A DNA stretch of 64,000 nucleotides from positions 24,304,001 through 24,368,000 of the forward strand of contig NC_135758.1 in the NCBI RefSeq assembly GCF_052425735.1. The letters run 5' to 3'. Source of the DNA: Oculina patagonica. Its lineage: Eukaryota. How positions within the stretch are numbered: position 1 is the stretch's first letter; each line of letters begins with the position of its first letter. The notes below the pieces were generated by a model that saw only the letters and a program-made list of their open reading frames with translations, searched no databases and had not been told where the DNA came from. Below are positions 41,801-63,745 of the stretch, piece after piece. The position numbers were made by a program, and so were the translations under genes.

Positions 41801-43203
41801 CTCTTGGATTACGATCGTAAAGACTTCATGAGCCAAATCCCATGCACACCAGAACACGCCGAGACATCCTAGATCACCCAGCCTAACCCTAAACTAAACT
41901 TGTTTTAAGGTGTTCCAGAAACTCTTTCAGTTCCGGCATGTATTTTGTTCTTTGTTTCTCGTTGCACCTGCCCCGCGAATGCAAGATTGCTACAAGTTAT
42001 TGTTAACTTAGTGTTTGAACTGCGTCATCATATCTCCTGTACCGTGGAGAGTCGAGAGAGGAATGGATCGAGTTATCTACATTCCAATACGATCCAAAAT
42101 GGAGCCAAAGTATAACTCAAAATAACTGAAAAGACTAAAACGAATACCAACCAACCCTTAAGCACTCTGCTGTGATAGAGAACTAAAGTAAAGGGCATCC
42201 AAGCTGGATGATTCTCCTTATGACTCGCTGTATGATACAGAAGTTAAAAGAATATTATTTTCTTTTGTGTGATTTTTTCCCAGGTTTCTCCTGATGATTT
42301 GGCAGGACCTCCAAACGCCGTGCTTCAGCAGATTCAAATCAAGTTCGTGTCCCACAAGAATTGCCGCGAAAACGCCACGAATGCTGAAGTAATAACAGAC
42401 AAAGTTGTCTGCGCTGGGGACTCTAGAGGGGAGAAGGATGCCTGCAAAGGCGACAGCGGTTCCCCCCTTGTGGTAGGTTAAAATTAATGTAGCTGTAAAG
42501 TTGATTACAGCTCATGAGGTGACAAACGTTAACGGTAACCAGCAAAATCTAGCTTCTGTCACATTCTCGGCCACTGTTTGCCCTCGTCCATCACGCATGG
42601 AGGAAGTCTGGCTAAGAGATTATCGAGGAAATGTAATTTTAATTACAAAAAGTTTTGGCCATGAGAGATTAGCACTACTGGAATAGCAAACGATTTTATA
42701 AGCCCTCTTTTCACTTCTTGGAGAGGTTTGTGAAACTCTATCAGTTTAAATTAAGTCAAACTACGTTTATAACACGCAGATGATGTCTAATAATCCAGAA
42801 TCCGTCCAGAATCTTAAGGTCAAACAGATGTATTCAAGTAGAAATCCCACTAATATCTAACACCTTTCAAGATCACGCCGCTACCCTATTTAACAAACTT
42901 CCAACGAACCTTAAAAACACTGTGGACCATGATGCATTTTGCAGGGAGGCAAAGCGCTTCCTTTTGAAGAAAACTAAATTAACAGATTGATCTCCTGTAG
43001 CTTTTTATTTTTATTTTTCTCTTAGATGTATATAGTATAGTATTTTTTTAAACGCATAAATGTATATAGTACAATATAGCATAGTAGTATACAGTAATTT
43101 AATGATTATAGAGTTTTAATTGTAAATATCATTTTATTTGTTAGGTTAGGTTAGTTTAATTGGTAAATGTAGAGCTACTATGTAGAAATGTTACCAATAA
43201 AGC

Positions 43204-43276
<73 letters not shown>

Positions 43277-43577
43277 ACTTTGAGCTCTCAGCTCTTTTGA
43301 TTGAACACCAGCTGATAATAGTGGATAAGGGTGAAAATCTCCTCGTCTATCTCTCATCCTTTGTCCACCCTTGTAATATTTTTATCCGGTATTTTCTTTT
43401 CATTAGGTCAGGCGTTCTGCGGATGATAGCTGGGCCGTGGTTGGTTTATCGAGCTGGGGAGAAGGATGTGCGACACAAGGAAAATACGGTGTATACACAC
43501 AACTGAAAAATTACATGCGCTGGATTAAACGAAGAATCAACCCAAGGAAGAAAGATAAAAACAAGAACAAGGATTAA
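35879..43577 (+). CDS. CFB: Complement factor B/C2-like serine protease (signal peptide, 2 EGF, 3 CCP/sushi, vWA, trypsin domain), 798 aa. Exons 35879-35951, 36656-37075, 37673-37867, 38300-38497, 38665-39003, 39292-39624, 40606-40845, 41547-41785, 42284-42472, 43407-43577
   Basis: Signal peptide [24 protein letters not shown]; EGF Cys patterns; three sushi modules; vWA MIDAS (DSSAS...GGTAT...ITDG); protease motifs [13 protein letters not shown] and [10 protein letters not shown]. All introns are GT-AG and phase-compatible; spliced length is 2397 nt. Confidence 0.9.
39914..40124. mobile_element. PIF/Harbinger-type MITE in a factor B intron
   Basis: TIR GGCTATGTTTACACGGGACCGGTCCGGAAC / GTTCCGGACCGGTCCCGTGTAAACGTAGCC, a 3-bp TGA target duplication on both sides, and internal copies of the TIR motif. 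Confidence 0.9.
42795..43273 (+). mobile_element. 5'-truncated LINE (CR1/L2-like clade) 3' end with an (ATT)n tail
   Basis: Translates to [52 protein letters not shown], matching the F..A..L[WF]N.LP..[IL]K....F C-terminus of LINE ORF2. It is followed by an AT-rich UTR, AATAAA and (ATT)~23 at 43205-43273. Confidence 0.75.
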
Positions 43578-44175
43578 GGAGTAGTACGGCTCAGATATTT
43601 CGTTTCAATCTTCGTGTTGTAGAATTTTGTTCATTGTAGATGTAAGGAAAAGAGTCTGAGATAAACCCTTAATTCCCACCGAGTAAAGTTAATGTATTTC
43701 TATATGGGAATTAATTTGGAAAATGACTGTTTCGCGCAGAGGAGTATATTCGTCTTTCCATTAGGTATGTCAATTTTTTCCACAGGCCTCTACCGTGAAT
43801 CGCTTCGATTACGTCACCTGCCCCACGTGAACCGAAACGAATTAACCACGCGCCTGGTAAAGAGGACTAGGAACTAGGCAAGATTCACAGGACGTCGATT
43901 AAAACGACGTTGTTCCCACTTTGTCTTTGATTAAACTATTACACCATAGAGGAAACAGGAAGGCATCTGTTTAGGCTATGCAACCACTTTGTTGCGAGTG
44001 TGAAAGCTATTTTGTACACAGCAGTATTGCAATATATTTTAAAGTGTTAAATTAAATTAAAGGAAATGCAGAAAAGTGTTCCTTGTCTTGAATGACTTAT
44101 TAAATTCAACCCCTCAGCTTTACTAGTAAGTTGAGCATATATTGGAAGCCAGCTATCTCGGACCCTTTAATTGTA

Positions 44176-44343
44176 AGGTAAATGTAGGTTAAGTCTGCAT
44201 ACGAGCCTAGTAGCCTGTCAGGCTGGAGCTTATCCCGATTTCCGTAGCATGAAGCAACTAGGAGTATTTCTACTCCCCCTGGATGGGATGCTAGTCCATC
44301 GCAGGGTTATTCTCCAGCATAAAAATCACCGGTACCCATTTAC
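44176..44343 (-). mobile_element. SINE 3' half (second copy at ~52427-52594; more degenerate relative at ~62700-62815)
   Basis: The minus strand reads ...GGTACC...AACCCTGCGATGGACTAGCATCCCATCCAGGGGGAGTAGAAATACTCCTAG...TGCAGACTTAACCT, a core I recall from metazoan tRNA-derived SINEs. Confidence 0.65.
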
Positions 44344-45888
44344 AGCGTAGAATTCCGAAAAGTTGCCTTTTTGCGAAATAACTTCACATCACTCTTTGGT
44401 AATAAGTTTCTTTTATATGTTTTTTTCCATGAGACATACCCTTTTTAAATGAAAAGACATTTTTTATTCATATTTCATTCGTAATTGTTTCTTCAGGACT
44501 CCCATAAATGTTAAGCGTAAATTGCCTAAAGAGGTAATCAATTACCAGTACCAACACGATAAACATCAAGTACAGTCAAGAATCTACACTCAAATTGCAA
44601 TGAAACGTGTGTCCAAGTTTACAAAACAATCAAGAATGTCTTCATAACCCCAGACGTTTTGCAGTTTTGGTTGATTTAGAGTTAACTCTTGTTCCAGTGT
44701 ACTGGTGTTTCGCTCTCTGTACTCTATCCGCGCTTTTGTAACTAGTACACACGTGTACTAGATTCCAGAACGGATGGAGATTTGACTTTTGTTAGTACCC
44801 TGCCGAAAAAAAGAAGTAAAATTAGTAAAGAAACTCTGAGTAACGCAATTGCCATTTCATGCATTGTTCGTATATTCCTGTGATGCATTTCTAGAGTAAA
44901 AATTAAACATGCAAGTGTTGGGGTGGGTACGGCTAAACGTAGGCTCGTGATTAGACTATCTTCTGTTCAATTAACGGAATTTCAGTTTGAATTCGTCCAA
45001 AACTAAATGCAACACGTTTTGACTGGCTAAATAATGAACTCATAAGAGTATTTTTTTTACTTTTAAAACAACATTTACAATGAGTGCTAATTATATAAAT
45101 AGCCAAAACTAAGCAAACTAAGCAACAAAATATAATGGCCCAAATGTTGTAGTAACTATTCCATACATGGGTAAGTAAAAACCACTCTTAAGTAAATCCC
45201 TACACCTCCTTTTAAATAGCTGGTAATCTTTGATTCAAAAGTTTACCTTATAAGCTTCCAATGCTTCCATAGTCATAAGCCGGGCTTACAGGACACTTTA
45301 TCCAAGTCTCAAATCCTTTTGATCTTCGAAAGGAAGACTATATCAGTCGGTATACATAAGTTTTAACGGGTTAATTATATGATGTTCAGGCAGTTTCACC
45401 AAGAAATTATTTCACGTAAACAATTAACAATAACAACAGTCGATCGTTACATGCATCATTTTAGCTATAATCTAGTTTTTCCTTTCCTCGACGTCCACAC
45501 ATCATAGCCGACTGGAAAAGTGTGAGGACATGTCGACAGACTGGATTTGCATCATCTTCTATTTACAGCAACAAAATATGTTTTTATAATTCTTTTTCAT
45601 TAAGGGTCAAAAATGCCTCAGTGCCTGCACTGTTTCTGCATTGCTTTTTGATTGGCTCATAACTGAAAGTCGTGTAAGACATGCTCCAACCACTCAGAGC
45701 GAAGCTAGATGTGCACGTGACTATTCCTGCGTGGAGTTACGTTGCTCATTCGCGGAGTCACGTTGTTCACTGTGTATCCACAGTGGCCTGTTTTAAAAAC
45801 AACTATGGTTCTATTGAGAAAGGATTTAAAAAGTGAGGGTTCCATATTCCTAAATAATTATAAAACAGAATTTCAGCAGCCAAAAAAC

Positions 45889-48829
45889 TTACTTTCCACT
45901 TGAGTCGTTGAACTTCTTACATATCATTCTACAATCTTGGATGTCTTGTCTCACATGTTCTAACAGCGCTTCGTGCTGTCTGTTTAGTTTCTGAAAGAAG
46001 GTTAATCTCTTTTTTATTCTGTTTGTCGTGTCTTCGTTGATGCAGTTTCTGAATGCGTCAAGTCTGAGTTTTTCTTTCTCTATTAACAAGTCTTGTTGTT
46101 TCTGTGCCTCGCGGAACTGGCTGAGTAAGCCCAGAATCTTTTCACGACATTCGGTTCCTTCGTCGCCGTTTTTTGCCACCTTCTGCCAGTTATGCACCTC
46201 CGTTCGGACTTGTACCTGCAAAAATCGCAAAATATCGATTTGTAGTTGGAGGTCACAAGATAGGAAACACTTCTTTGATGAGACTGAATTGCTCTTACAA
46301 GAGGACAACTTACGTTATAAACAGTAAGATCACAATCAAAAGAGCACTAAGGTCTTCGCAGTTATACCAGGCAGTTAAAATGAAAACCTAAAGTGAAAAA
46401 ATAATAAGCTCGAACAAGATTCAAACCGATGTCCTTTGTTATCTTCGTAATAAACGCGTTAGCACTTTACTATGAACCCACTGCGACCTGATCAGAACAC
46501 ATGATGACAGCCTTTAGGCGTGGTACAGAATGCATCTTGAATTTATTTTAATAAAGAAGTTCTTTCATTATATATAGAGTGGTGACAGTATAAATGGATA
46601 ATTTACCAAGGTACGCAAGCGCATTTCGAAGAACACCCGTCTACATGTACTATGTGTGGCGAATTTATAAAAAAAGCTCGTTAATTCTTCAACGCAATCA
46701 TCTTGAAAAAACCCCGTTTACTATCAGAAATTCTGAATTTGACGAGGCAAGCCAGGCTGCTTCGACGAACATTATGTCCGTTTATTTTTGGCCCGGGGAG
46801 GAGGAGGGAGGTGCGTGCATACTGTTTTATTCTACACACGTACTATTTATTATTAAGAAATTGCAATTACCTGAATTATTTTCTTCTGTTCTTGGTAATG
46901 CTGACAAAGCTTGGTGAAGTGTTCAAACTTGTAGTCGGGAGGAGATTGCACAGTGTTGACTAGCTATTATACATATAAAAACATAATGACAATTAGATTG
47001 TTCTTACAATAGGTAATTAACGCAACTCGCAGAAATGCAAGCAAGGTGCCAGACAGAGGGTATCGCGTCCAGACTTCCCTCAAAATAAGCAAAATTGAAT
47101 TAGTTAGGACTATTTGTGCATGGAAGAGAGTTGGTACAGATACTAATAAGGTTCTTTATGCGCATAATTAAAAGTCAGTTATTTGAAAGGAAGAACCAGT
47201 AACTAGATATGCGACTGATCTACACGACCCGCGGCTAATTAAGGTTGTACCGTAAATTGGTCTCTAGCTGTGGTAAACAGAGCATCATAAAAAAACTGTA
47301 AAGGATTTTTTCACCCAGAAGCTATCAAGTGCTAGTTATAAATTGTGCGTGCGGCCAAATCGATTTCGGAGGGAGAAAAACCAGAGTACACGGAGAAACA
47401 CCCTCGAAGCAGAGACGGAGAGCCAACCATCTTTACAAAAAAACAGGCTCAGATTTTTTTTGGATTTTTTTTCTTAAGCTTAGTGATTCGAAGAGTGATA
47501 GTGTTATAGGATGGAAAAAGACTTACCTATGTCACGGTTATATCAAATTAACAATAACAAAGACATACAGACATTGACATTACGATACACTTGTGAATGA
47601 GACCTGTCCTCACAACACTGATGGTAGCTGTCTTCTAGTTGTCTTGTCATTGGTCAGTTAGTCAGACACAGAATGACTACACAAACATAGCTGCAATGCA
47701 CAACTCAAAACAAACATTTAAAAGTAACAAACAAAACAAACACGTAAATGTACAAGTAAGTAGCCTTAACATAGTTTTATGCCACAGAGACATTTCGTTC
47801 ATCCTTACATGAACAAGATGCTAACGCGAAGTGCAAAGCAATAAGGCTTAGTATCTTTAATTAAAGACAAGATATGCCAGTCAAATTCGTTTATAGCCAG
47901 GCATGGTTAAATGGATTAAAAGGGGTCAACACTGGCTTAAAAAGGACGTTTTGTTGTTATAGTTCTCGTGTTGAATTCAAAAACCCTTATTTTTATAGAG
48001 CATTCATTATCACATTTATTGTATGTATTTTTAATTCGTTTGTTTCTTATAACACCAAAGATGCCGTTAATCATTTACTTTTTTGGCTGAAGAGGGTAAT
48101 AGCAGTAACTGAAACGTCCTTACATAGTTTTTTAAAGCCAGTGTCAATCGTTTTTAATCCATATGTCAATCAGCTTATTCTGAGAAATGTAAATCTTTTC
48201 ATGGGATAAGTTTGCAACATTCAATTTGGACTCTCAGTAATATGCACAATACAAGAGTATAAAATTTGTCTTATATTGAGTTTAAAAATCCAATTTGTAA
48301 GTAAAGTTTGTAATTTTACATAAGGGTGTTGCTCTTCTGCATGGAAGATACGTATTTATTTCAATTATCCCTGCAAGTGTCAGAATAAAACGGTTTTGGT
48401 TTCATTCCAAACATTTACGAAACAGACTCTATGCGTATTGCCAAAAAACTTGAAACTGTCCTTGAGAAACAGATCTTTAAATAAAGAATAAGTCTGAAAA
48501 TCACATTTGCAGCCCGACAGGTCCGACAAGAACTCTTGCAGACCCGAGAAAATGTGTTGATGACAATATTTAAAATGCTCGACAGGTAAATACTAAGCTG
48601 ATTGCGAAGAACATTGGGCAGACCTACTGTGCAAGATGCGGGACAGACAAGCCGTAATGCATACAATAAGAAAGAAATTGAAACAAGAATGGTAATATGA
48701 TAAATTTAGTTGGTAAAATAAACAGAATTTGAGAAAAAAACAGTCACCAACCGTATTGTTGTTTTGTTTTACTGGTGGCAGTGCAGGTGGCTTATTGGCC
48801 AAGCCCATCGAGCTCATTGTAGTTCCCAT
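45889..48829 (-). CDS. Uncharacterised ~165-aa helical protein with an N-myristoylation motif (family member A, copy 1). Coding exons 48829-48752, 46963-46871, 46215-45889
   Basis: Translates as MGTTMSSMGLANKPPALPPVKQNNNT | LVNTVQSPPDYKFEHFTKLCQHYQEQKKIIQ | VQVRTEVHNW...DSSGK*. All introns are phase-0 GT-AG. The exons are conserved in the second copy while the flanking introns diverge, and the protein is homologous to the one encoded at 63158-63745. Confidence 0.7.
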
Positions 48830-51032
48830 GGCAACCTGCCAAGGGCTTGGTTTTAGGAAAGTGTTTTTCTCCAAATTTTTTCCTGAAATTATAAAAATAA
48901 AAATATAATGATTTTAAAGAAAAAGAATTTAAAAGTAATTCTTAGCACTATTTTACAGCTTAAAATAAGTTCTTTTAGTGTGTGAAACTGGTCCGGCTAT
49001 ATAATCTGCATGTCGAAAAACATGTCAAGCTTCAAAAGCGATACCTGTTTTAAAATTAACAGTCGGGCGCTGTTCCAGAATAGTTTTCTGTTAGCTTAGC
49101 TTGAATTTAGCTAATTCAAAGCAATTTGCTTCAACGAAGAGCTTTCCTTTGCAACAGTTCGCGCGAGCATTGTTCAAATTAATTATAATTTCATGCATCG
49201 AAAAGAGAACAAAAATAACAACAATACAGCTATATATAATAACAGGTCCAATACAGTTACATATTCCCTGCAGAGGTTTTCGCTGAATATTCAAGTTTTT
49301 CTACATGCCTAAAGCATAACAGGGACCACTAAGGGCTCGGATGTAACAACGTTAGAATAAAAAATGTATCAAATGAGACAATTGCAAAACGATTTCGGTA
49401 TTGAGTTGAATTATTACAAAGGCTTTGTTGCTTTAAATACTCCTAGAATCACGAGCTTAATTCGAAAAAAATAAATTGTAAAGGAGACAACCTTACATTT
49501 TTAGAGTAGCATATGCTTACCTGGGAAAGTCAGTGCACAATGTAGTTATTCGGATATACCTCTTGCTAATCGCCACTTGTTAACAAAAACCTCACGATGT
49601 GCACGTTTTACGTTGCACGACGGGCTGAGTGCAGGTGTACTGCAAAAGCTTTTCTCTTTCCCAGTTAAATCTGCTGGGAGTAAGCGCTTGTTTGCCAGTT
49701 GATTTCTGTTGATAAACTGTTTTGCTGAAAGGTTTGGGAATTGTGTAGACGCACTAACGCAGACTGATGATGTGAAGTCATCGCGTCAAAAACGTGCGGC
49801 ATCGACTGCAAGGTTAACACGCCCTGCAATATCAGACCTATGACACCACATGGGCAAAAGTGAATTGTGTTGTTTTTCTACCAGGAATTTATTGAAAATG
49901 GGCGAGCCCGTGTCAGCGGTATCACGAATTAAGGCGCGGCTTTTTGGCAACCAGCCGGTTTACAAGTAAAAGGGTTCCTTTACCGGATGAAAACTACACA
50001 AGCAAACTGCTTTTAACTGTTTAAGTTGATTCAAGAAAGTGTAAACACCTACGCGACTTTGATAATCTAATAGCGATTAATAAAGTACTAGTTGTTTTGA
50101 ATTAACCAAGAATACTAAATAAAAAGCCTAAAGATGCATCTGGACAGGGTTAGTCTCGATCCGAAGTATAATTTCACAAATATCAGTGCATGCATCGGCC
50201 ATTTTTCGCTGGTATTTGTGAGTATTTTACTTCAGATTGAGACTACCTTTGATGCTTCTTAAGTGTTTTTTTCAGCGGTCTTGGTTACTTTGAATCATTA
50301 AGGACAGCAAAGTTCTGTTATTTAATTTTTTAAAAAACCATTTTGTAATTATTGTTTTAAATTAACAATTTTTTATGTTTACCCAGGCCTCCACTAGACA
50401 CCAGCCTATGGCTTTGCCCTGAATGTGCCACCTTGCTTGCTCCTTATGTCACATTCAATTTTATAAAAGTCACTTTCCTGACGTGCAAAATTCAGATTTT
50501 CAACATTGAAGAAAACTTCAAAATAACAGTTTTCCAATATAGAAAAACACCGAAAAGAATTAATAAAAAAAGAAAATGAACAAGGACGATTACTTTGAAA
50601 GGAAGCCGGATTAAGACGGAAAACCAAACAACAACCTTGAAAAAAAAATTGGCCAATTTTTTCCAAGATTCGCCGGCTTTCCAGTCGTCAGTCCTGTCCC
50701 GAGTATTAAAATACTCGGGTAGGTACACTGGTGAAATAGGCCTTAAAGGCTCTCCTCGAATTTTGAAAATAACATTTGCGAATTTGGTCACCCGTAGAAT
50801 ATGTCATAAAGGCGTAGAGAAACAGGTAAAATTTAAAAGTTGGTTTAGGGAATACGCACAAGTGTAAGCTTAAACACAAGCATGAGTATAAGCCACAATT
50901 TGACAATGTAGAGGAGCACTCGACGCTTTGATAATTTCGTGGTAACCTTCCTTCTGGATCCGACCGAAGAAAGGGGTGCGTGTACTAGACGTCACTCAAA
51001 GTGTAGAACAGACAGCTTAAATTGCAAGGCTA

Positions 51033-51532
51033 NNNNNNNNNNNNNNNNNNNNNNNNNNNNNNNNNNNNNNNNNNNNNNNNNNNNNNNNNNNNNNNNNNNN
51101 NNNNNNNNNNNNNNNNNNNNNNNNNNNNNNNNNNNNNNNNNNNNNNNNNNNNNNNNNNNNNNNNNNNNNNNNNNNNNNNNNNNNNNNNNNNNNNNNNNNN
51201 NNNNNNNNNNNNNNNNNNNNNNNNNNNNNNNNNNNNNNNNNNNNNNNNNNNNNNNNNNNNNNNNNNNNNNNNNNNNNNNNNNNNNNNNNNNNNNNNNNNN
51301 NNNNNNNNNNNNNNNNNNNNNNNNNNNNNNNNNNNNNNNNNNNNNNNNNNNNNNNNNNNNNNNNNNNNNNNNNNNNNNNNNNNNNNNNNNNNNNNNNNNN
51401 NNNNNNNNNNNNNNNNNNNNNNNNNNNNNNNNNNNNNNNNNNNNNNNNNNNNNNNNNNNNNNNNNNNNNNNNNNNNNNNNNNNNNNNNNNNNNNNNNNNN
51501 NNNNNNNNNNNNNNNNNNNNNNNNNNNNNNNN
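51033..51532. other. Scaffold gap (500 N)
   Basis: Run of exactly 500 N, consistent with a fixed-size scaffolding spacer. Confidence 0.98.
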
Positions 51533-51657
51533 GAGCTCTCAGCCCTTTTGATTGAACACCAGCTGATGATAGTGGATAAGGGTGAAAATCTCTTCGTCTA
51601 TCTCTCACCCTTTGTCCACCCTTGTAATCTTTTTATCCGGTATTTTCTTTTCATTAG

Positions 51658-51828
51658 GTCAGGCGTTCTGCGGATGATAGCTGGGCCGTGGTTGGTTTAT
51701 CGAGCTGGGGAGAAGGATGTGCGACACAAGGAAAATACGGTGTATACACACAACTGAAAAATTACATGCGCTGGATTAAACGAAGAATCAACCCAAGGAA
51801 GAAAGATAAAAACAAGAACAAGGATTAA
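51658..51828 (+). other. Duplicate of the last factor B exon (orphan; probably the other haplotype)
   Basis: Matches 43407-43577 ([21 protein letters not shown]...KNKD*). No upstream exons are present after the gap. Confidence 0.85.
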
Positions 51829-54140
51829 GGAGTAGTACGGCTCAGATATTTCGTTTCAATCTTCGTGTTGTAGAATTTTGTTCATTGTAGATGTAAGGAA
51901 AAGAGTCTGAGATAAACCCTTAATTCCCACCGAGTAAAGTTAATGTATTTCTATATGGGAATTAATTTGGAAAATGACTGTTTCGCGCAGAGGAGTATAT
52001 TCGTCTTTCCATTAGGTATGTCAATTTTTTCCACAGGCCTCTACCGTGAATCGCTTCGATTACTTCACCTGCCCCACGTGAACCGAAACGAATTAACCAC
52101 GCGCCTGGTAAAGAGGACTAGGAACTAGGCAAGATTCACAGGACGTCGATTAAAACGACGTTGTTCCCACTTTGTCTTTGATTAAACTATTACACCATAG
52201 AGGAAACAGGAAGGCATCTGTTTAGGCTATGCAACCACTTTGGTGCGAGTGTGAAAGCTATTTTGTACACAGCAGTATTGCAATATATTTTAAAGTGTTA
52301 AATTAAATTAAAGGAAATGCAGAAAAGTGTTCCTTGTCTTGAATGACTTATTAAATTCAACCCCTCAGCTTTACTAGTAAGTTGAGCATATATTGGAAGC
52401 CAGCTATCTCGGACCCTTTAATTGTAAGGTAAATGTAGGTTAAGTCTGCATACGAGCCTAGTAGCCTGTCAGGCTGGAGCTTATCCCGATTTCCGTAGCA
52501 TGAAGCAACTAGGAGTATTTCTACTCCCCCTGGATGGGATGCTAGTCCATCGCAGGGTTATTCTCCAGCATAAAAATCACCGGTACCCATTTACAGCGTA
52601 GAATTCCGAAAATTTGCCTTTTTGCGAAATAACTTCACATCACTCTTTGGTAATAAGTTTCTTTTATATGTTTTTTTCCATGAGACATACCCTTTTTAAA
52701 TGAAAAGACATTTTTTATTCATATTTCATTCGTAATTGTTTCTTCAGGACTCCCATAAATGTTAAGCGGAAATTGCCTAAAGAGGTAATCAATTACCAGT
52801 ACCAACACGATAAACATCAAGTACAGTCAAGAATCTACACTCAAATTGCAATGAAATGTATGTCCAAGTTTACAAAACAATCAAGAATGTCTTCATAACC
52901 CCAGACGTTTTGCAGTTTTGGTTGATTTAGAGTTAACTCTTGTTCCAGTGTACTGGTGTTTCGCTCTCTGTACTCTATCCGCGCTTTTGTAACTAGTACA
53001 CACGTGTACTAGATTCCAGAACGGATGGAGATTTGACTTTTGTTAGTACCCTGCCGAAAAAAAGAAGTAAAATTAGTAAAGAAACTCTGAGTAACGCAAT
53101 TGCCATTTCATGCATTGTTCATATATTCCTGTGATGCATTTCTAGAGTAAAAATTAAACATGCAAGTGTTGGGGTGGGTACGGCTAAACGTAGGCTCGTG
53201 ATTAGACTATCTTCTGTCCAATTAACGGAATTTCAGTTTGAATTCGTCCAAAACTAAATGCAACACGTTTTGACTGGCTAAATAATGAACTCATTAGAGT
53301 ATTTTTTTTTACTTGTAAAACAACATTTACAATGAGTGCTAATTATATAAATAGCCAAAACTAAGCAAACTAAGCAACAAAATATAATGGCCCAAATGTT
53401 GTAGTAACTATTCCATACATGGGTAAGTAAAAACCACTCTTAAGTAAATCCCTATACCTCCTTTTAAATAGCTGGTAATCTTTGATTCAAAAGTTTACCT
53501 TATAAGCTTCCAATGCTTCCATAGTCATAAGCCGGGCTTACAGGACACTTTATCCAAGTCTCAAATCCTTTTGATCTTCGAAAGGAAGACTATATCAGTC
53601 GGTATACATAAGTTTTAACGGGTTTATTATATGATGTTCAGGCAGTTTCACCAAGAAATTATTTCACGTAAACAATTAACAATAACAACAGTTTAACGTT
53701 ACATGCATCATTTTAGCTATAATCTAGTTTTTCCTTCCCTCGACGTCCACACATCATAGCCGACTGGAAAAGTGCGAGGACATGTCGACAGAATGGATTT
53801 GCATCATCTTCTATTTACAACAACAAAAAATGTTTTTATAATTCTTTTTCATTAAGGGTAAAAAATGCCTCGGTGCCTGCACTGTTTCTGCATTGCTCTT
53901 TGATTGGCTCATAACTGAAAGTCGTGTAAGACATGCTCCAACCACTCAGAGCGAAGCTAGATGTGCACGTGACTATTCCTACGTGGAGTTACGTTGCTCA
54001 TTCGCGGAGTCACGTTGTTCACTGTGTATCCACAGTAGCCCGTTTTAAAAACAACTATGGTTCTATTGAGAAAGGATTTAAAAAGTGAGGGTTCCATATT
54101 CCTAAATAATTATAAAACAGAATTTCAGCAGCCAAAAAAC

Positions 54141-57100
54141 TTACTTTCCACTTGAGTCGTTGAACTTCTTACATATCATTCTACAATCTTGGATGTCTTG
54201 TCGCACATGTTCTAACAGCGCTTCGTGCTGTCTGTTTAGTTTCTGAAAGAAGGTTAATCTCTTTTTTATTCTGTTTGTCGTGTCTTCGTTGATGCAGTTT
54301 CTGAATGCGTCAAGTCTGAGTTTTTCTTTCTCTATTAACAAGTCTTGTTGTTTCTGCGCCTCGCGGAACTTGCTCAGGAAGCCCAGAATCTTTTCACGAC
54401 ATTCGGTTCCTTCGTCGCCGTTTTTTGCCACCTTCTGCCAGTTATGCACCTCGGTTCGGACTTGTACCTGCAAAAATATCGATTTGTAGTTGGAGGTCAC
54501 AAGATGGGAAACACTTCTTTGATGAGACTCAATCAGTTGCTCTTACAAAGAGGACAACCTACGTTATAAACAGTAAGATCACAAGCAAAAGAGCATAGGT
54601 CTTCGCGTATAGGGTGAAAATGAAAATGAAAAAAAAAAAAGAAGTACAAGTTACGAACCGATACCCTTTGTAATCTCGATAAAAAACGCGTTAGCACTTA
54701 CATATGACCCACTGACAACCTTTAATCCGCAATTAAATAGAGTGAAGCCTTTAGGCAGCATAAAATACAGAATACATCTCGAACTTATTTAAAGAAGTTC
54801 TTTCATTATATATAGAGTGTTGACAGTATAAATGGATGATTTACCAAGGTCCGCAAGCACATTTCGACGAACACCCGTCTACATGTACTATGTGTGGTGA
54901 ATTTATGAAAAAAATCCGTTGATTCTTCAATGCAATCATCTTGAAAAAAACACTTAACTAACAGATATTCTGAATTTGACGAAACAAGCCAGACTGCTTC
55001 GACGAACAGTTTTCCCGATTTTTCCTTTTGGGCCCGGTGGGAGAAGGGAGGTACGTACATACTGTTTCGTTCTACACATTTATTGCTTATGATTTTAATA
55101 AAATAAATTGCTTTTTTACCTGAATTATTTTCTTCTGTTCTTGGTATTGCTGGCAAAGCTTGGTGAAGTGTTCAAACTTGTAGTCGGGAGGAGATTGCAC
55201 AGTGTTGACTAGCTATTGTACATATAAAACCATAATGGCAATTAGATTGTTCTTACAAGGGTTATAAACGTAACTCACAGAACTGCTAGCAAGGTGCCAG
55301 CCGGTCGGCTTCCCTCAAGATAAGAAAAAATTAGATTGGCTAGGACTGCTTATTGATGGAACACAGTTGGTAGTGATAGGTTTTTTCGAAGGTCCTTTAT
55401 GCCTGTCATTAAAAGACCGTTATTTTAAAGGAAGAGTTGATCTTTGTTGTCGAAACCAGCTTCAAACAAATAGCTACAACATAGATATGTTACACCTCGT
55501 CTAGATAAAAATGATCTACACGACCTGCGGCTAATTCAGGTTGTACATAAAACAATAAGTCTTGACCTGGAGTTGTGGTTAACACAGATAAAACAATAAA
55601 AAGTGATTGTTTTTACCCAGAAACTCTCAATAACTCGCTATGGATTCTACGTGAGGCCAAATTGATTAGAATTTTAAGTATTGGTTTTGTGGAGGAAGAA
55701 AAACCGAAAAAAGTAAGAGATAAACCCCTGAAGCAGAGACGGAGAGCCATCTATTCAGCCATAAACCAGGCTCAGATTTCATCAGATTTTCCGGCTTTAG
55801 TGACCCAAAAAGTGATTGTGCTATAGGATGGAAAATAGACTTACCTATGTCACGGTTATATCAAATTAACAATAACAAAGACATACAGACATTGACATTA
55901 CGATACACTTGTGACTGAGACCTGTCCTCACAACACTGATGGTAGCTGTCTTCTTGTTGTCTTGTCATTGGTCAGTTAGTCAGACACAGAATGACTACAC
56001 AAACATAGCTGCAATGCACAACTCAAAACAAACATTTAAAAGTAACAAAAAAACAAACACGTAAATGTACAAGTAAGTAGCCTTAATATGGTTTTATGCC
56101 ACAGAGACATTTCGTTCATCCTTACATGAACAAGATGCTAACGCCAAGTGCAAAGCAATAAGGCTTAGTATCTTTAATTAAAGACAAGATATGCCAGTCG
56201 AATTCATTCATACCCAGGCATGGTTAAATGGATTAAAAAGGGTTAACACTGGCTTAAAAAGGACGTTTTGTTGTTATAGTTCTCGTGTTGAATTCAAAAA
56301 CTCTTATTTTCTTAGAGCATTTATTATCACATTTATTGTATGTATTTTTAATTTGTTTCTTTCATATAACACCAAAGATGCCGTTAATCATTTACTTTTT
56401 TGGCTGAAGAAGGTAATAGCAGTAACTGAAACGTCCTAACATAGTTTTTTAAAGCCAGTGTCAATCGTTTTTAATCCATATGCCAATCAGCTTATTCTGA
56501 GAAATGTAAATCTTGTCATGGCATAAGTTTGCAACATTCAATTTGGACTCTCAGTAATATGCACAATACAAGAGTATAATTTTTTTCCTATATTGCGTTT
56601 AAAAATCCAATTTGTAAGTAAAGTTTGTAATTTTAGATACGGGTGTTGCTCTTCTGCATGGAAGATACGTTTTTATTTCAATTATCCCTGCAAGTGTCAG
56701 AATGAAACGGTTTTGGTTTCATTCCAAACATTTACGAAACAGACTCTATGTGTATTGGCAAAAAAAACTTGAAACTGTCCTTGAGAAACAGATCTTTAAA
56801 TCAAGAATAAGTCTAAAAATCACATTTGCAGCCCGACAGGTCCGACACGAACTCTTGAAGACCCGAGAAAGTGTGATAATGATAATATTTATAATTCTCG
56901 CCAGGTAAATATTAAGCTGATTGCGAAGAAACATCTGGCAGACCTGCTGTGTAAGATGCGGGACAGACAAGCCGTAATGCATAAAAAGAGAAAGAAATTG
57001 AAACAAGAATGGTAATATGATAAATTTAGTTGGTAAAATGAACAGGATTTGAGACAAAAAAATAACAGTCACCAACCGTATTGTTGTTTTGTTTTACTGG

Positions 57101-57154
57101 TGGCAGTGCAGGTGGCTTATTGGCCAAGCCCACCGAGCTCATTGTAGTTCCCAT
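54141..57154 (-). CDS. Second copy (probable allele) of family member A. Exons 57154-57077, 55212-55120, 54467-54141
   Basis: Same exon sizes (78, 93, 327 nt) and splice sites as copy 1, with few substitutions (M8V, H>Q, LLSQF>FLSKF). Confidence 0.7.
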
Positions 57155-59320
57155 GGCAACCTGCCAAGGGCTTGGTTTTAGGAAAGTGTTTTTCTCCAAA
57201 TTTTTTCCTGAAATTATAAAAATAAAAATATAATGATTTTAAAGAAAAAAGAATTTAAAAGTAATTCTTAGCACTATTTTACAGCTTAAAATAAGTTCTT
57301 TTAGTGTGTGAAACTGTTGCTATATAATCTGCATGTCGAAAAACATGTCAAGCTTCAAAAGCGATACCTGTTTTAAAATTAACAGTCGGGCGCTGTTCCA
57401 GAATAGTTTTCTATTAGCTTAGCTTGAATTTAGCTAATTCAAAGCAATTTGCTTCAACGAAGAGCTTTCCTTTTCAACAGTTCGCGCGAGCATTGTTCAA
57501 ATTATTTATAATTTCATGCATCGAAAAGAGAACAAAAATAACAACAATACAGCTATATATAATAACAGGTCCAATACAGTTACATATTCCCTGCAGAGGT
57601 TTTCGCTGAATATTCAAGTTTTTCTACATGCCTAAAGCATAACAGGGACCACTAAGGGCTCGGATGTAACAACGTTAGAATAAAAAATGTATCAAATGAG
57701 ACAATTGCAAAACGATTTCGGTATTGAGTTGAATTATTACAAAGGCTTTGTTGCTTTAAATACTCCTAGAATCACGAGCTTAATTCGAAAAAAATAAATT
57801 GTAAAGGAGACAACCTTACATTTTTAGAGTAGCATATGCTTACCTGGGAAAGTCAGTGCACAATGTAGTTATTCGGATATACCTCTTGCTAATCGCCACT
57901 TGTTAACAAAAACCTCACGATGTGCACGTTTTACGTTGCACGACGGGCTGAGTGCAGGTGTACTGCAAAAGCTTTTCTCTTTCCCAGTTAAATCTGCTGG
58001 GAGGAAGCGCTTGTTTGCCAGTTGATTTCTGTTGATAAACTGTTTTGCTGAAAGGTTTGGGAATTGTGTAGACGCACTAACGCAGACTGATGATGTGAAG
58101 TCATCGCGTCAAAAACGTGCGGCATCGACTGCAAGGTTAATACGCCCTGCAATATCAGACCTATGACACCACATGGGCAAAAGTGAATTGTGTTGTTTTT
58201 CTACCAGGAATTTATTGAAAATGGGCGAGCCCGTGTCAGCGGTATCACGAATTAAGGCGCGGCTTTTTGGCAACCAGCCGGTTTACAAGTAAAAGGGTTC
58301 CTTTACCGGATGAAAACTACACAAGCAAACTGCTTTTAACTGTTTAAGTTGATTCAAGAAAGTGTAAACACCTACGCGACTTTGATAATCTAATAGCGAT
58401 TAATAAAGTACTAGTTGTTTTGAATTAACCAAGAATACTAAATAAAAAGCCTAAAGATGCATCTGGACAGGGTTAGTCTCGATCCGAAGTATAATTTCAC
58501 AAATATCAGTGCATGCATCGGCCATTTTCCGCTGGTATTTGTGAGTATTTTACTTCAGATTGAGACTACCTTTGATGCTTCTTAAGTGTTTTTTTCAGCG
58601 GTCTTGGTTACTTTGAATCATTAAGGACAGCAAAGTTCTGTTATTTAATTTTTTAAAAAACCATTTTGTAATTATTGTTTTAAATTAACAATTTTTTTAT
58701 GTTTACCCAGGCCTCCACTAGACACCAGCCTATGGCTTTGCCCTGAATGTGCCACCTTGCTTGCTCCTTATGTCACGTTCAATTTTATAAAAGTCACTTT
58801 CCTGACGTGCAAAATTCAGATTTTCAACATTGAAGAAAACTTTAAAATAACAGTTTTCCAATATAGAAAAACACCGAAAAGAATTAATAAAAAAAGAAAA
58901 TGAACAAGGATGATTACTTCGAAAGGAAGCCGGATTAAGACGGAAAACCAAACAACAACCTTGAAAAAAAAAATTGGCCAATTTTTCCCAAGATTCGCCG
59001 GCTTTCCAGTCGTCAGTCCAGTCCCGAGTATTAAAATACTCGGGAGGTACACTGGGAAATAGGCCTTAAAGGCTCTCCTCGAATTTTGAAAATAACATTT
59101 GCGAATTTGGTCACCCGTAGAATATGTCATAAAGGCGTAGAGAAACAGGTAAAATTTAAAAGTTGGTTTAGGGAATACGCACAAGTGTAAGCATTAACAT
59201 AAGTATAAGTCACAATTTGAAAATGTAGAGGAGCACTCGACGCTTTGATAATTTCGTGGTAACCTTCCTTCTGGATCCGACCGAAGAAAGGGGTGCGTGT
59301 ACTAGACGTCACTCAAAGTA

Positions 59321-59538
59321 TAGAACAGACAGCTTAAATTGCAAGGCTAGTACAGCGGAAATGAAGATACAGTAGGCTGGCTTTTTCATGGCCAATATTT
59401 CGACGAGTAGTACTAGTCTTACTCCTACTCTGGCACCGTAGAAGACTTGATCTGCTAGTCGAAATAGTGGCCATTAAAAGGCCTGCCTATATCTTAATTT
59501 CCGTCGTACTAGCCTTGCAATTTAAGTTGTTTGTTCTA
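59321..59538. repeat. Long imperfect inverted repeat (fold-back), arms ~100 bp
   Basis: GCTTAAATTGCAAGGCTAGTACAGCGGAAAT...ATATTTCGAC pairs with GTCGAAATAG...ATTTCCGTCGTACTAGCCTTGCAATTTAAG. Confidence 0.85.
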
Positions 59539-60003
59539 AAAGTAAAAGCATAACCCGAGATCATGCCCTCCCTCCCTATTTACTTCCCTCCCTCATTCTT
59601 GTCATGATGTCATTACACGACATAAAGGTAAGCATTATGCAGAAGCACAAGAAGGACGAACCTTTTTGTTTTCTTGTGCTTTAATATGGTTATGCCATAG
59701 CGATTCCTAGTAAGGACTGCAAAAGTGTGTGTTTGATCTTCTTATGCGCTAATGTTAATTCTTATGCTTGCGTCTATCGACGATTCCAAATCAAGATTTA
59801 CAGCAAGGCGCCCAAAAATGTGACCACCTTTAATTAATTCACATTCTTTCGTACAACCACCATCCAATCAGAAGCCAAGGACAGCTCCCAGTTGACTTCT
59901 GATTGGATTAAATCTGCACGGAAGAATGTGAATAAATTAAAAGTGGTCGCACTTTGGGCGCCTTGCTGTAATTTAGTTTGGCGCGCAAAAAGAGAGGATT
60001 TAA

Positions 60004-60300
60004 GGAGGCAGCGTGGCCTGGTGGCTAGGGCGGTCAACTTGTAATCCGGAGGTCCCGGGCTCAAATCCTCCTTAATTCCTGCTGGTTGGACTTGTGTTCG
60101 GTAGTCCCGATTTCAGCTCCTTCACGCTTTGTAAATAGCCAACTCAACTGGTCAGCCTCTTGCCAGTTGGGATTTTTAATTTAACAAGTTTCTGTTCTAT
60201 TGACAATATTTGTTCTTATATTTATGGTGTCCCCAATTAGCACAGCAGTGCTAAATACACTGACACTGAAATAAGATGATTTATTTTTTATTTTATTTTC
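60004..60300 (+). mobile_element. tRNA-derived SINE
   Basis: tRNA-like head GGAGGCAGCGTGGCCTGGTGG (A box) ... GGCTCAAATCC (degenerate B box), a body containing TTGTAAATAGCCAACT...CCAGTTGGGATT, and an AT-rich tail. Confidence 0.7.
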
Positions 60301-60713
60301 ATTTAAAAGAAATGGTGAAGAAATTATAACTTCAAAGAAGACCGCGTAAGATAAAATCGCAGACTTGTGTTTACACCAAACTTAGTTTTGCCCACCCGCC
60401 CGCCCGCCTACTTGATTGGTTGAAGTTAAATCAGCTGCATTGTTTGATCAAAAAGATAATCTCGAACTTAAAAGTAAAAACATTAGGAAAATTACATTTT
60501 TTTCGAATAACGTTGATGGTTAAACAAAGTTAGGAGCTCATAAAAACTGGATGAATTGTAAGGTAGATTTTAACTGAGGTCAAAATAAATTGCTTGCCGT
60601 GACGAGTAATTCTTGCTGTTAGTAAATGCGCAAAGCCATTAACTCGGTGATTCACACTTTATTATCATCTGCGCCGACTCGCTTGCTCAATGCTCAGTGT
60701 TCGCGATGCAGTC

Positions 60714-60721
60714 TATAAATA
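60714..60721 (+). promoter_or_regulatory. Putative TATA box of member B
   Basis: CTATAAATA about 70 nt upstream of ATG 60788. Confidence 0.4.
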
Positions 60722-60787
60722 TGGTATGCTATCTCGTTTGAGTTGATAAGTGTGCTTGCAGACCTTCGATTTGACTTCAGTTTTATC

Positions 60788-63745
60788 ATGGGAATTGTTT
60801 TGTCGTTTTGCTGGAGAATGCTTCACAGACTTCCCCTTACAAAAGAAACACCAAAAACAGAGACGCAGCAACAGAAGGCAGACGATTCAAGACTGACGGT
60901 AAAATTTTAGTGTTAAGGATATATCGTTCGAGCGAAAGCGCCAGGTGCCGTGCGCGGTTCAACAGATACCGGTCGCATTTCATTTTGTCGGGGCAGTTTT
61001 AAATGACAACTTAAAACAGTAAGAATCAAAACCTTGAACAATAATATTTGACTTTACACAGCAAGGATTCTTTGAAGATGACAAAAATATCTAAATTGAC
61101 TTTCGCGAGCTCGTTTCCAGTAATAAAATATGTTACACGAATTTCTCGTAACGTTAAACTTCATGTAGCACTGATAGATTTGAAACAGTTCATGATTTTG
61201 TTTCTTGTGGAATCTATGTGAGAGAAAAAAAATGTTTTTTTTAAACAAAGCTGGGCGAACTACATGAGAATATAAATAACCTGTGAATTGAGTTTAGTTT
61301 TAGCAACAGGAAATGCGATATAATTTTTTTATTTTTACATTCGTTCAAAATAGATAGTCAAATCAGTTTATCACTTTATTTTATCGTTCAATACGTGCTT
61401 CGCATGTTCGGGTATCTGTATCATTTCTACATCTTTGATTTTTTATTGATACAAAAGTGCAGTTTAAAATTTTAATGTCAACTTGAGTTTATAACGTCTA
61501 AACAGAAATAATTTTCTTATTGCCCTTTATGCGCTGCCAATCAAAATCCGTGCCTCTATTGGCGCACGAGGATTAACATTAAAATCCGTGTATTTTTTTA
61601 TCGGCCAGACTTGAAACAGGATCGGATTAGCTCTTGTGAAAAAATTTAATCAGTCGGCAGAGGAATACAGAAACCTAAAGGTTTTGCAAATATTTAAAGT
61701 GGTTATCTTGAACAATTATGGTGGATTGGGATAAAGATACACACCAGTAAAATATAAGATCGCTGGCTTTTGACTCTGAGAGTAATTTGAATGATTGACA
61801 TAATTTGAAAACACCTGCTTGCAACTTCCAAAACACGATGCCGCAAGCCCTCAGCAAGTCAGGAATATAAACTATTTTCTTCTCATCCGCATGCCAACTC
61901 TGATAAATGACTGTCTCAATAAAAGTGGAATCGCCGAAGAAAAAGCTTGATTTAAAGCTCAACTAGACAAAAACAACGCAACAAAACTAAGCCAAGGATT
62001 TGAAATAGTTATAATTGATCAACATGATTTTCAGTCAATTGATAAGACAGTTGACTCGGGGTAAAGAAAAATTTATCCGATACTCGAAATTCATATTAAA
62101 GGAAATAGTGCCGTATAAGCAGATTTAGCAGCGCTTTTGAGACTGTGATTGAAAGCCGTGAGTGACGTTCCTGCTGGATCCTGATGTAACTTGCAAACTT
62201 AGATGGCTGTCCACAACCAAAATAACATTAATATTTACATTACGGAGTTCGAAGTAAATATCGTATCGGTCTTATTTTAATGTTTTATGTATTGCATTCG
62301 ACTGCTGGCCGAGAGGAAGAAGCTAAACTTTGATAGACAACATTGTCTGGACTTCTTGAATTTCCATTACATGTGGCTCATGCAGAAATCTCAAAACCAA
62401 GTGAAAACCATTTTTATTTATAAGTCAATGGGAAAAAGCATAGCAGTACGAAGCCCCCTTTTCCTCTAGTTTGAAGGACTGATGGAATAGTTATCAGTAT
62501 ACCGCATAAGAGGAGAATCGAAGATAAGACTTCTTCCCAGAGTTTTCCCTCACTGCCAAACCCTATGACTCAGATGGAGCACGAGTCCCATATTTTAAAT
62601 TGCAACTAAAATGTAACCGCTATCTGTGAGAAATTTATCATCTGATCACATCCATTGACAACTGGGTACGCTGTTTTTTCGGTGTAACATTATGCCCCTG
62701 GGATTATTGTCCCCCCTACCCTAGATGGGATACTTGTCCATTCGCAGGTTACTCTCCAGCATTGTTTCAGATTTCTCAACAATTGGCAGGCACCCATTCA
62801 TACATTCGGGGGAAAAGTACCAAGTGATAACGAAATCCCGCCTCCGAGGCGGTACTGAGCTTGCGGTGTTTGCCCCAGAAGTCGCTAAGCGACTTAACGT
62901 AATTGTTCGCGTGATTGCTTTCGGAATACTCGGGAGCGCTCGCGTTAGTTTTTGATTGGTTGAAATAATTCGGAAACTCTTCGAGTTCTTTAAGGCACTT
63001 ATCTCCTGACAGCTGTATACTGCTGGGCGTAGAAAACGAATTGCCCTTCCAAAGAAAATAACCCGGTAGCTGGGTATAAGTAAGCATTAACATTTCAAAA
63101 TAAGCGAAAATAAATACCTTTGCTTTTGACAAAATGAATTATTTTTACATGTACCAGGATGTGCTGAGAAATGGCTCGCGGTGTTGTACTGACGTAACAT
63201 GTACCAGCTTGGTAAAGACTGCCAAGGAGCTGTTAACAAGAATGGAACAAATTCAAACACAACTTCATAACGAAGTTATCTTGTGGAAGTTGAGATTCAT
63301 AAGAGGCATCTGCAGCACAGAGAGTCGACAAAACTTCTACGAACTCCTTCGAAAGTTTAACTCGTTTCATGAAATGCTTGACGCCATTATTGAAAACGAA
63401 ATAAAGTATCTTAATGCGATAGACCCGGAACAAGAGGCAGGCGAAAATGCAGATGTTGAAGCCGCTAAAGCGTTGAAGAAAACACCAAGCGAAGACAAAA
63501 AAGCTTTAAAACGAAGAGCGAAGTTTTTCACAAAGGTACATGAACGCAATGTGAAACTGTTGTTTGTTGTCCTAAACGAAGTAGCAGAGTGCCGATCAAT
63601 GGTGGATTCTAATAGCCATGAGTGTTCAGACAGCTTAACTTTAGAAATGGAAGAAACTGGTAGATTCTTGAGCGTTTTGAAGGAATCCAACGAAGAACTG
63701 GTCGAATTTACGCCATCACGGCGTTGTTCTTACAAACCTGAATAA
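60788..63745 (+). CDS. Uncharacterised ~232-aa helical protein with an N-myristoylation motif (family member B). Exons 60788-60898, 63158-63745
   Basis: MGIVLSFCWRMLHRLPLTKETPKTETQQQKADDSRLT, then ACG|GTAAAA at 60899 and taccag|GAT at 63158 (phase 0) into the 63134 ORF. TATAAAT lies near 60715 and AATAAA overlaps the stop codon. Confidence 0.7.

Follow-up and report, generated by a model that had tools for sequence, protein, structure and literature searches.

In this work, we analyzed a window of 64,000 nucleotides from Oculina patagonica (G000:C1:24304001-24368000; positions given below count from its first base), in which two genes, here called A and B, lie head-to-head. As the original prediction had proposed from the letters alone, they are transcribed divergently from start codons at 57154 (minus strand) and 60788 (plus strand), which are 3,634 bases apart. 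A and B are genuine and intact, and they are paralogues within a nameless family known to date from Cnidaria only; in both of them a short first exon with a Met-Gly start precedes the part encoding a predicted bundle of three long helices. The central idea of the original prediction, the gene pair, the paralogy and the fold stood, whereas its model of gene A and the generality of a cysteine in B did not, and it had overlooked that gene A is present twice in the window.

The structure of gene B could be read from transcripts of O. patagonica itself. Its product of 232 amino acids is encoded in two exons, the second of which specifies a cysteine cluster (RCCTDVTCTS), the three-helix bundle, an insert between helices 2 and 3 and an acidic tail. 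A 365-nt contig of sequencing run X5 joins positions 60682-60897 to 63157-63301, skipping 2,259 bases with GT..AG ends, and the depth of this run sits on the two B exons and is zero in the intron except for one repeat bin; this is how RNA would behave, and the splice falls at the predicted junction (60898/63158). The contigs of runs X1 and X2 cover introns and intergenic DNA and were hence taken as DNA-like and uninformative on splicing, and the poly-A tags of run X16 landed on repeats only. The 5' end of the X5 contig is 106 nt before the gene B ATG, which places the Met-Gly codons inside the transcript. The existing O. patagonica annotation of gene B (P0001, ACROYT_G002100) has the same junction and starts at Met11, and the corresponding NCBI hypothetical protein ACROYT_G002100 (222 amino acids) is 100 % identical to the translation of exon 2 of gene B. 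Position 11 is isoleucine in the B orthologues of Stylophora (MGTIVSLCWRILSRF) and Desmophyllum (MGIVLSFAWRILHRL) and both retain Met1-Gly2, which indicates that the upstream methionine is the conserved start; the N-termini of B orthologues read MGTIVSLCW and MGIVLSFAW. The annotated start at Met11 omits the residues MGIVLSFCWR (window 60788-60817), that is, the conserved N-terminus with its putative lipidation signal. The 5' leader covered by the X5 contig (60682-60787) holds several upstream ATGs opening short open reading frames, as well as a TATAAATA at about 60716. Besides, a second high-copy element was observed in the B intron at 62801-63000, where the depth reached about 900-1,100 in three contig runs.

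Gene A comprises four exons that encode 189 amino acids in each of its two copies, every intron having GT..AG ends. It had been described as a three-exon gene of 165 amino acids ending in a TAA at 54143-54141, a triplet that in fact overlaps the donor of exon 3 (GGAAA/GTAAGT, the slash marking the exon border). A Logan contig from another coral (L001) reads past the end of exon 3 with YKGFETWIKCPASPAYDYGSIGSL, exon 3 being spliced to exon 4, and tblastn places this tail at 53577-53503 (copy 2) and 45325-45251 (copy 1), with an AG acceptor of fitting phase ahead of it. Furthermore, the four A exons are joined in L008 and L009, two spliced contigs of other corals with a nucleotide identity of about 80 %. 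The junctions 48752/46963 and 46871/46215 that had been proposed for A are the exact exon borders of copy 1, and the same splices are seen in L008 and L009; the start codon at 57154 belongs to copy 2, so the earlier coordinates had mixed the two copies. In the gene-caller output of L008 and L009, the sequence 5' of MGTTMSS starts at a TTG, with no in-frame ATG. Splicing is demonstrated for A in the RNA of related corals, and splicing and transcription for B in Oculina.

The same layout of A, from the Met-Gly start to a YDYGS-GS tail, was recovered in the Nematostella RefSeq protein XP_032225892 (P0061) and in the proteins P0157 of Actinostola and P0071 of Xenia. The C-terminal tail is conserved in anthozoan A proteins as W-I/L-K/R-C-P-x4-Y-D-Y/F-G-S-I/V-G-S-L/I, and the linker of hexacoral A proteins shares KPPALPP(A/V)K. 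Some database entries for A are irregular. In Desmophyllum (L005:6372-6785, MU826406.1) exon 3 is matched by two alignments that overlap and differ greatly in identity, and the annotated product P0078 (109 amino acids) ends in unrelated residues, an apparent frameshift due to either an assembly error or a pseudogene. In Nematostella, P0063 (327 amino acids) and P0084 (218 amino acids) are older predicted proteins and P0062 (371 amino acids) carries the identical A core; in P0062 and P0063 this core is joined to sequence unrelated to it, and P0063 is labelled in one source as an F5/8 type C domain protein. These fusions are probably chimeric models. The coordinates of the genes, and of the other features discussed below, are collected in Table 1.

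Table 1. Features of the O. patagonica window and arrangement of the corresponding genes in other genomes.
Feature	Position	Strand	Description
Gene A copy 2, exon 1	57077..57154	-	MGTTMSSVGLANKPPALPPVKQNNNT, 26 codons, donor ACG/GT, phase 0; same exon in coral mRNA contigs L008, L009
Gene A copy 2, exon 2	55120..55212	-	31 codons, LVNTVQSPPDYKFEHFTKLCQQYQEQKKIIQ; helix 1 begins (helix from Nematostella orthologue model)
Gene A copy 2, exon 3	54145..54467	-	323 nt, remainder of three-helix bundle; phase-2 donor GGAAA/GTAAGT
Gene A copy 2, exon 4	53500..53575	-	(K)SKGFETWIKCPVSPAYDYGSIGSL and stop (coding 53575-53503, stop 53502-53500); from tblastn and sequence
Gene A copy 1	45248..48829	-	Exons 48829-48752, 46963-46871, 46215-45893 (phase-2 donor), 45323-45248; intact, 189 amino acids
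Gene B, exon 1	60788..60898	+	MGIVLSFCWRMLHRLPLTKETPKTETQQQKADDSRLT, 37 codons, donor ACG/GTAAAA, phase 0
Gene B, exon 2	63158..63745	+	195 codons and stop; acceptor ...ccag/GAT
A-B spacer	57155..60787		3.6 kb between divergent start codons
Palindromic MITE-like repeat, about 175 bp	59798-59971		In A-B spacer of Oculina
Repeated block, copy one	43282..51032		Last factor-B exon, A copy 1, 2.2 kb upstream of A; reaches gap (self-BLAST)
Assembly gap, 500 N	51033..51532		Sole N run in window; exactly between block copies
Repeated block, copy two	51533..59349		Begins at first base past gap
Complement factor B/C2-like gene	36460..43574	+	EGF, three Sushi, VWA, Trypsin (Pfam scan of exon translations; open frames); convergent with gene A
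Dynamin N-domain gene	G000:C1:24371459-24374434	same as B	Beyond window, about 3.7 kb past B stop
Desmophyllum pertusum	MU826406.1		One A and B head-to-head, 7.6 kb apart; dynamin gene after B
Assembly L011 (European Nucleotide Archive)			Dynamin (-), B (-), A (+), factor B (-); candidate start codons 2.25 kb apart
Assembly L010			Factor B (+), A (-), B (+); candidate MG exons MGSSSSRE (A), MGIFLSIS (B), 1.6 kb apart, phase-0 donors
Nematostella vectensis			A tail-to-tail with Sushi/VWA/Trypsin gene (L007); no B within 10 kb

The translated exons of A and B share 25 % identity (BLASTP E 2e-06), and their family profiles align with an hhalign probability of 95.6 % (E 1.2e-8), the B profile having an insert between helices 2 and 3, which bears out their proposed paralogy. 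Three matching loci only, B and the two copies of A, were found in the O. patagonica genome. A HMMER search with a profile of both families among 1.84 billion protein representatives (E 0.001 or better) yielded 33 proteins; the named members are all cnidarian (Nematostella, Actinostola, Xenia, Hydractinia, Stylophora, Desmophyllum and Porites) and are labelled as uncharacterised, hypothetical or predicted proteins. In a maximum-likelihood tree of 29 members, A and B form two clades, each with 100/99 support, and the branches are markedly shorter in the A clade (hexacorals, octocorals and the hydrozoan) than in the long-branched B clade. The A of assembly L010 is closest to that of the octocoral Xenia (63-67 %), which suggests an octocoral-like lineage, and the two-clade topology implies that the A/B duplication is at least as old as the split of the L010 lineage from hexacorals.

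As had been stated, this family could not be assigned to a known one. Exon translations of the window gave only scattered, sub-threshold and inconsistent Pfam matches, and no consistent match above threshold was obtained when the rows of both family alignments were scanned (17 each, 34 in total); nothing below E 0.3 was found among PDB sequence profiles, no usable match or cluster in an ESM Atlas feature search, and no literature under the locus names and accessions of A and B. Lineage-restricted uncharacterised families are commonplace.

Self-BLAST of the window showed a block of about 7.8 kb repeated at 94-96 % identity on either side of an assembly gap, whereby gene A is present twice. At the left border of the block lies a long trinucleotide microsatellite-like repeat (43160-43297), read as a run of about 25 Ile codons. 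We consider it likely that the scaffolder has put together the overlapping ends of two contigs that stem from different haplotypes: both alignments reach precisely to the 500-N gap, as expected of overlapping contig ends, the left border of copy one adjoins the microsatellite-like repeat, and only one A is present in the relatives, which in L010 and L011 is flanked by factor B and B and in Desmophyllum lies beside B. A genuine recent tandem duplication in O. patagonica, in which only copy 2 would face B, would fit with each copy being intact, with 9 coding nucleotides and 4 amino acids between them, and with a non-coding divergence of 4-6 %, which is high for alleles; given the position of the alignment ends and the single A of the relatives, we regard it as possible but rather doubtful.

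The complement factor B gene that had been named as a neighbour was recognized by the factor B/C2 architecture of its product, with one EGF, three Sushi, a VWA and a Trypsin domain. The order in O. patagonica is factor B-like (+), A (-), B (+), followed by the dynamin N-domain gene, and because the latter also comes after B in Desmophyllum (L006) and L011, the four genes make up a conserved block. The head-to-head arrangement of A and B, which the original prediction had proposed to look for in other anthozoans, is present in Desmophyllum and in the anthozoan assemblies L010 and L011, whereas Nematostella keeps the pair of A and factor B only. In contig L008 (905-3514, against window 39380-45323) the A mRNA lies on one strand and spliced 3' exons of factor B on the other, so that the convergent transcripts abut or overlap in that species.

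The spacer between A and B ranges from 1.6 to 7.6 kb across the genomes examined, and in Oculina it contains a repeat resembling a miniature inverted-repeat transposable element (MITE), for which at least 2,695 first-look candidates exist in the genome; the copies are 95-98 % identical, those listed match both strands, and the depth in the corresponding bin (59801-60000) was about 2,650-4,440 in three contig runs. Rfam and tRNA scans of the spacer and of the B intron detected nothing. With this variable length and the MITE insertion, the spacer is not a compact bidirectional promoter of the classical type. A shared regulation of A and B, as had been suggested, would agree with their conserved divergent orientation, which does not demonstrate it.

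As originally observed, the first exons of A and B both end in ACG before a GT donor in phase 0, and the predicted myristoylation signal lies in the two paralogues on this separate mini-exon, in identical phase. All 19 recovered N-termini, 14 of the A type and five of the B type, fit the pattern M-G-{EDRKHPFYW}-x-x-[STAGCN]-{P}; by PROSITE PS00008-type criteria, they combine Met-Gly2 with permitted residues at positions 3, 6 and 7, conserved among the orthologues. The expected conservation of Gly2 and of a small residue at position 6 holds from the hydrozoan to scleractinians. Past residue 7, the linker differs among Hydractinia, Xenia and hexacorals. No in-frame upstream ATG precedes the starts of A and B in the window, nor that of A in the coral mRNAs L008 and L009. 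Neither protein has a signal peptide or a transmembrane segment, the highest Kyte-Doolittle value in a 19-residue window being 0.21 for A and 0.96 for B. The cysteine at position 8 of B, put forward as a possible palmitoylation site, is present in three of the five B N-termini (Oculina, Stylophora and the L011 candidate) and absent in Desmophyllum and in the L010 candidate.

These observations can be set against the possibility that A and B are soluble, non-lipidated three-helix-bundle proteins of a cytoskeletal, nuclear or chaperone-like kind, the Met-Gly start of which would derive from the initiation context or from N-terminal processing. The fold is a generic one, with structural matches that include the STAT coiled-coil, MukF, BAG and spectrin-like bundles, and Cys8 of B is not universally conserved, both of which would agree with soluble proteins. 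In contrast, such proteins would hardly be expected to show the full myristoylation pattern in 19/19 N-termini over two clades while the neighbouring residues diverged, nor to carry it on an own mini-exon, in the same phase, in both paralogues. We thus consider this explanation unlikely.

Regarding the remainder of the proteins, AlphaFold2 with the family alignments returned the helical-bundle core that had been foreseen. The model of the Nematostella A orthologue (mean predicted local distance difference test score, pLDDT, 74.9) has helices at residues 36-72, 77-115 and 118-160, with values of 80-97 in the core and below 50 in the first 31 residues; that of the Stylophora B orthologue (mean pLDDT 71.2) has helices at 54-86, 91-125 and 147-197, in addition to a low-confidence helix at 2-13. 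In Foldseek searches, no entry of the PDB or of the AFDB clusters reached E 0.001, and the syntaxin-1 Habc domain ranked first with E 0.03. Among the Swiss-Prot models of AFDB, the A model matched R9AP (E 1.6e-2, probability 1.00), then several R7BP orthologues and then syntaxin-1A. With an aligner independent of Foldseek (VIA), the top match of A was syntaxin 2xhe_B (Z 13.1, 154 residues), and B was matched first by the 1EZ3-derived scaffold 3lg7_A (Z 12.0) and second by the squid syntaxin Habc domain 1s94_B (Z 11.7, root-mean-square deviation 1.8 Å over 117/118 residues), the syntaxin Habc matches of B spanning overall Z 11.7-12.0 and deviations of 1.8-2.4 Å. A complex predicted between coral A (45-201) and Oculina B (28-222) had a median score of 0.00, which carries no weight for or against binding.

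That R9AP, R7BP and syntaxin-1A lead the reviewed structural matches, that syntaxin Habc domains top the PDB matches of both proteins and that an R7-type regulator of G-protein signalling (RGS) with a DHEX domain is encoded in the O. patagonica genome could be taken to mean that A and B are very divergent true homologues of Habc-type anchors, either R7BP/R9AP or syntaxin-like, in which the anchor has moved to the N-terminus. The E-values and Z-scores are within the noise of helical bundles, though, and there was neither a Pfam or PDB profile match nor a match outside the family among the 1.84 billion proteins; A and B are, besides, without a SNARE motif, a C-terminal transmembrane helix or a polybasic-CysCys anchor. 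True homology is accordingly quite improbable in our view.

On balance, we lean towards A and B being lipid-anchored, putatively N-myristoylated, peripheral-membrane adaptors with an Habc-like bundle, in the form of two intact cnidarian paralogues. Several points weigh against this interpretation. The AlphaFold2 models are those of the Nematostella A and Stylophora B orthologues and not of the Oculina proteins, and the structural matches are not significant, with Foldseek E-values of 0.016 or worse and Z-scores of about 13, which, as the aligner itself cautions, are ordinary for long helical bundles. Of the 19 N-termini, those of A and B in L010 and of B in L011 were chosen by the pattern itself and are not independent. 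In addition, the Kozak context favours a G at position +4, and disordered N-termini often contain small residues. Finally, myristoylation, palmitoylation, membrane location and binding are all read from the sequence.

Gene structure, splicing, paralogy, taxonomic spread, conserved gene order and predicted fold have been shown here, whereas lipidation, membrane location and the adaptor role are inferred. The proteins have a three-part layout. The separate phase-0 first exon provides a Met-Gly start with the pattern of an N-myristoyltransferase substrate; a low-confidence linker follows, with a conserved KPPALPP in hexacoral A and modelled in B as a short N-terminal helix and then a Cys-rich stretch; and in the predicted core, three long helices pack into an antiparallel bundle of the syntaxin-Habc or R7BP-R9AP type. 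Gly2 would be myristoylated co-translationally, and nearby cysteines may be palmitoylated in some of the B proteins. These lipids would hold the bundle on the cytosolic side of a membrane, and partners might be recruited there by the bundle and by the tail of A, A and B thereby acting as lipid-anchored adaptors.

A family without a name that is conserved from Hydractinia to reef corals gives rise to a clear biochemical prediction, namely N-myristoylation. If its members are membrane adaptors, they could reveal a part of membrane signalling or trafficking that is specific to cnidarians and perhaps tied to innate immunity through factor B. The A paralogue is the slow-evolving one, with a conserved C-terminal motif, and the linkage to factor B is old, the order and orientation of factor B, A, B and the dynamin-like gene having been kept in several anthozoans. 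It is tempting to speculate further that A and B are Cnidaria-specific anchored Habc-like adaptors that replace R7BP/R9AP, for instance by tethering R7-RGS/Gbeta5, and that A is also functionally coupled to factor B, as anthozoans keep these two genes convergent with 3' ends that are close or overlapping; we would give this extended version very little credit, slightly less still than true homology to the Habc-type anchors. At a practical level, the annotation of the locus needs to be corrected, with a B N-terminus that is at present ten residues short in Oculina, a four-exon model for A and A copies that are probably an assembly artefact.

Within the known systems, we read the resemblance to syntaxin, R9AP and R7BP as a common fold and a working analogy, not as proof of membership. 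Syntaxin, the top PDB match of both A and B, has in its Habc domain an antiparallel bundle of three helices, about 120 residues long, that resembles the one modelled for A and B, with scores (Z 11.7-13.1, Foldseek E 0.03) in the range seen for generic helical bundles. Syntaxin differs in having a SNARE motif and a C-terminal transmembrane anchor, which were not found in A and B, and Pfam Syntaxin/SNARE matched none of the 34 alignment rows scanned. R7BP and R9AP, the best reviewed-protein matches of the A model, are the anchors of complexes between R7-family RGS proteins and Gbeta5, and are held by a C-terminal transmembrane helix or by a polybasic stretch with palmitoyl-cysteines. A and B are like them in the small, in A and B predicted, Habc-like three-helix core combined with a terminal anchor, putative in A and B, and differ from them in that this anchor would be an N-terminal myristoyl-glycine instead of a C-terminal element, the structural match being weak (E 0.016-0.1). 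A C-terminal anchor of the R7BP/R9AP kind was not found, since the tail of A reads SKGFETWIKCPVSPAYDYGSIGSL and that of B is acidic, with neither a transmembrane helix nor a polybasic-CysCys stretch; sequence similarity to R7BP/R9AP did not turn up in the Pfam, PDB and profile searches, in which no R7BP/R9AP profile or sequence was compared. The R7-type RGS of O. patagonica is encoded at G000:C11:15418626-15419859 (DHEX domain, 41 bits, above the curated cut-off). The Pfam families of LAMTOR1, from Ragulator, and BORCS5, from BORC, were absent from the scans of A and B at E up to 1-10. Both are N-myristoylated adaptor subunits that tether their complex to a membrane, and as small helical proteins with a Met-Gly start they resemble A and B by design only, thus offering an analogy for the mechanism by which the cnidarian pair might work.

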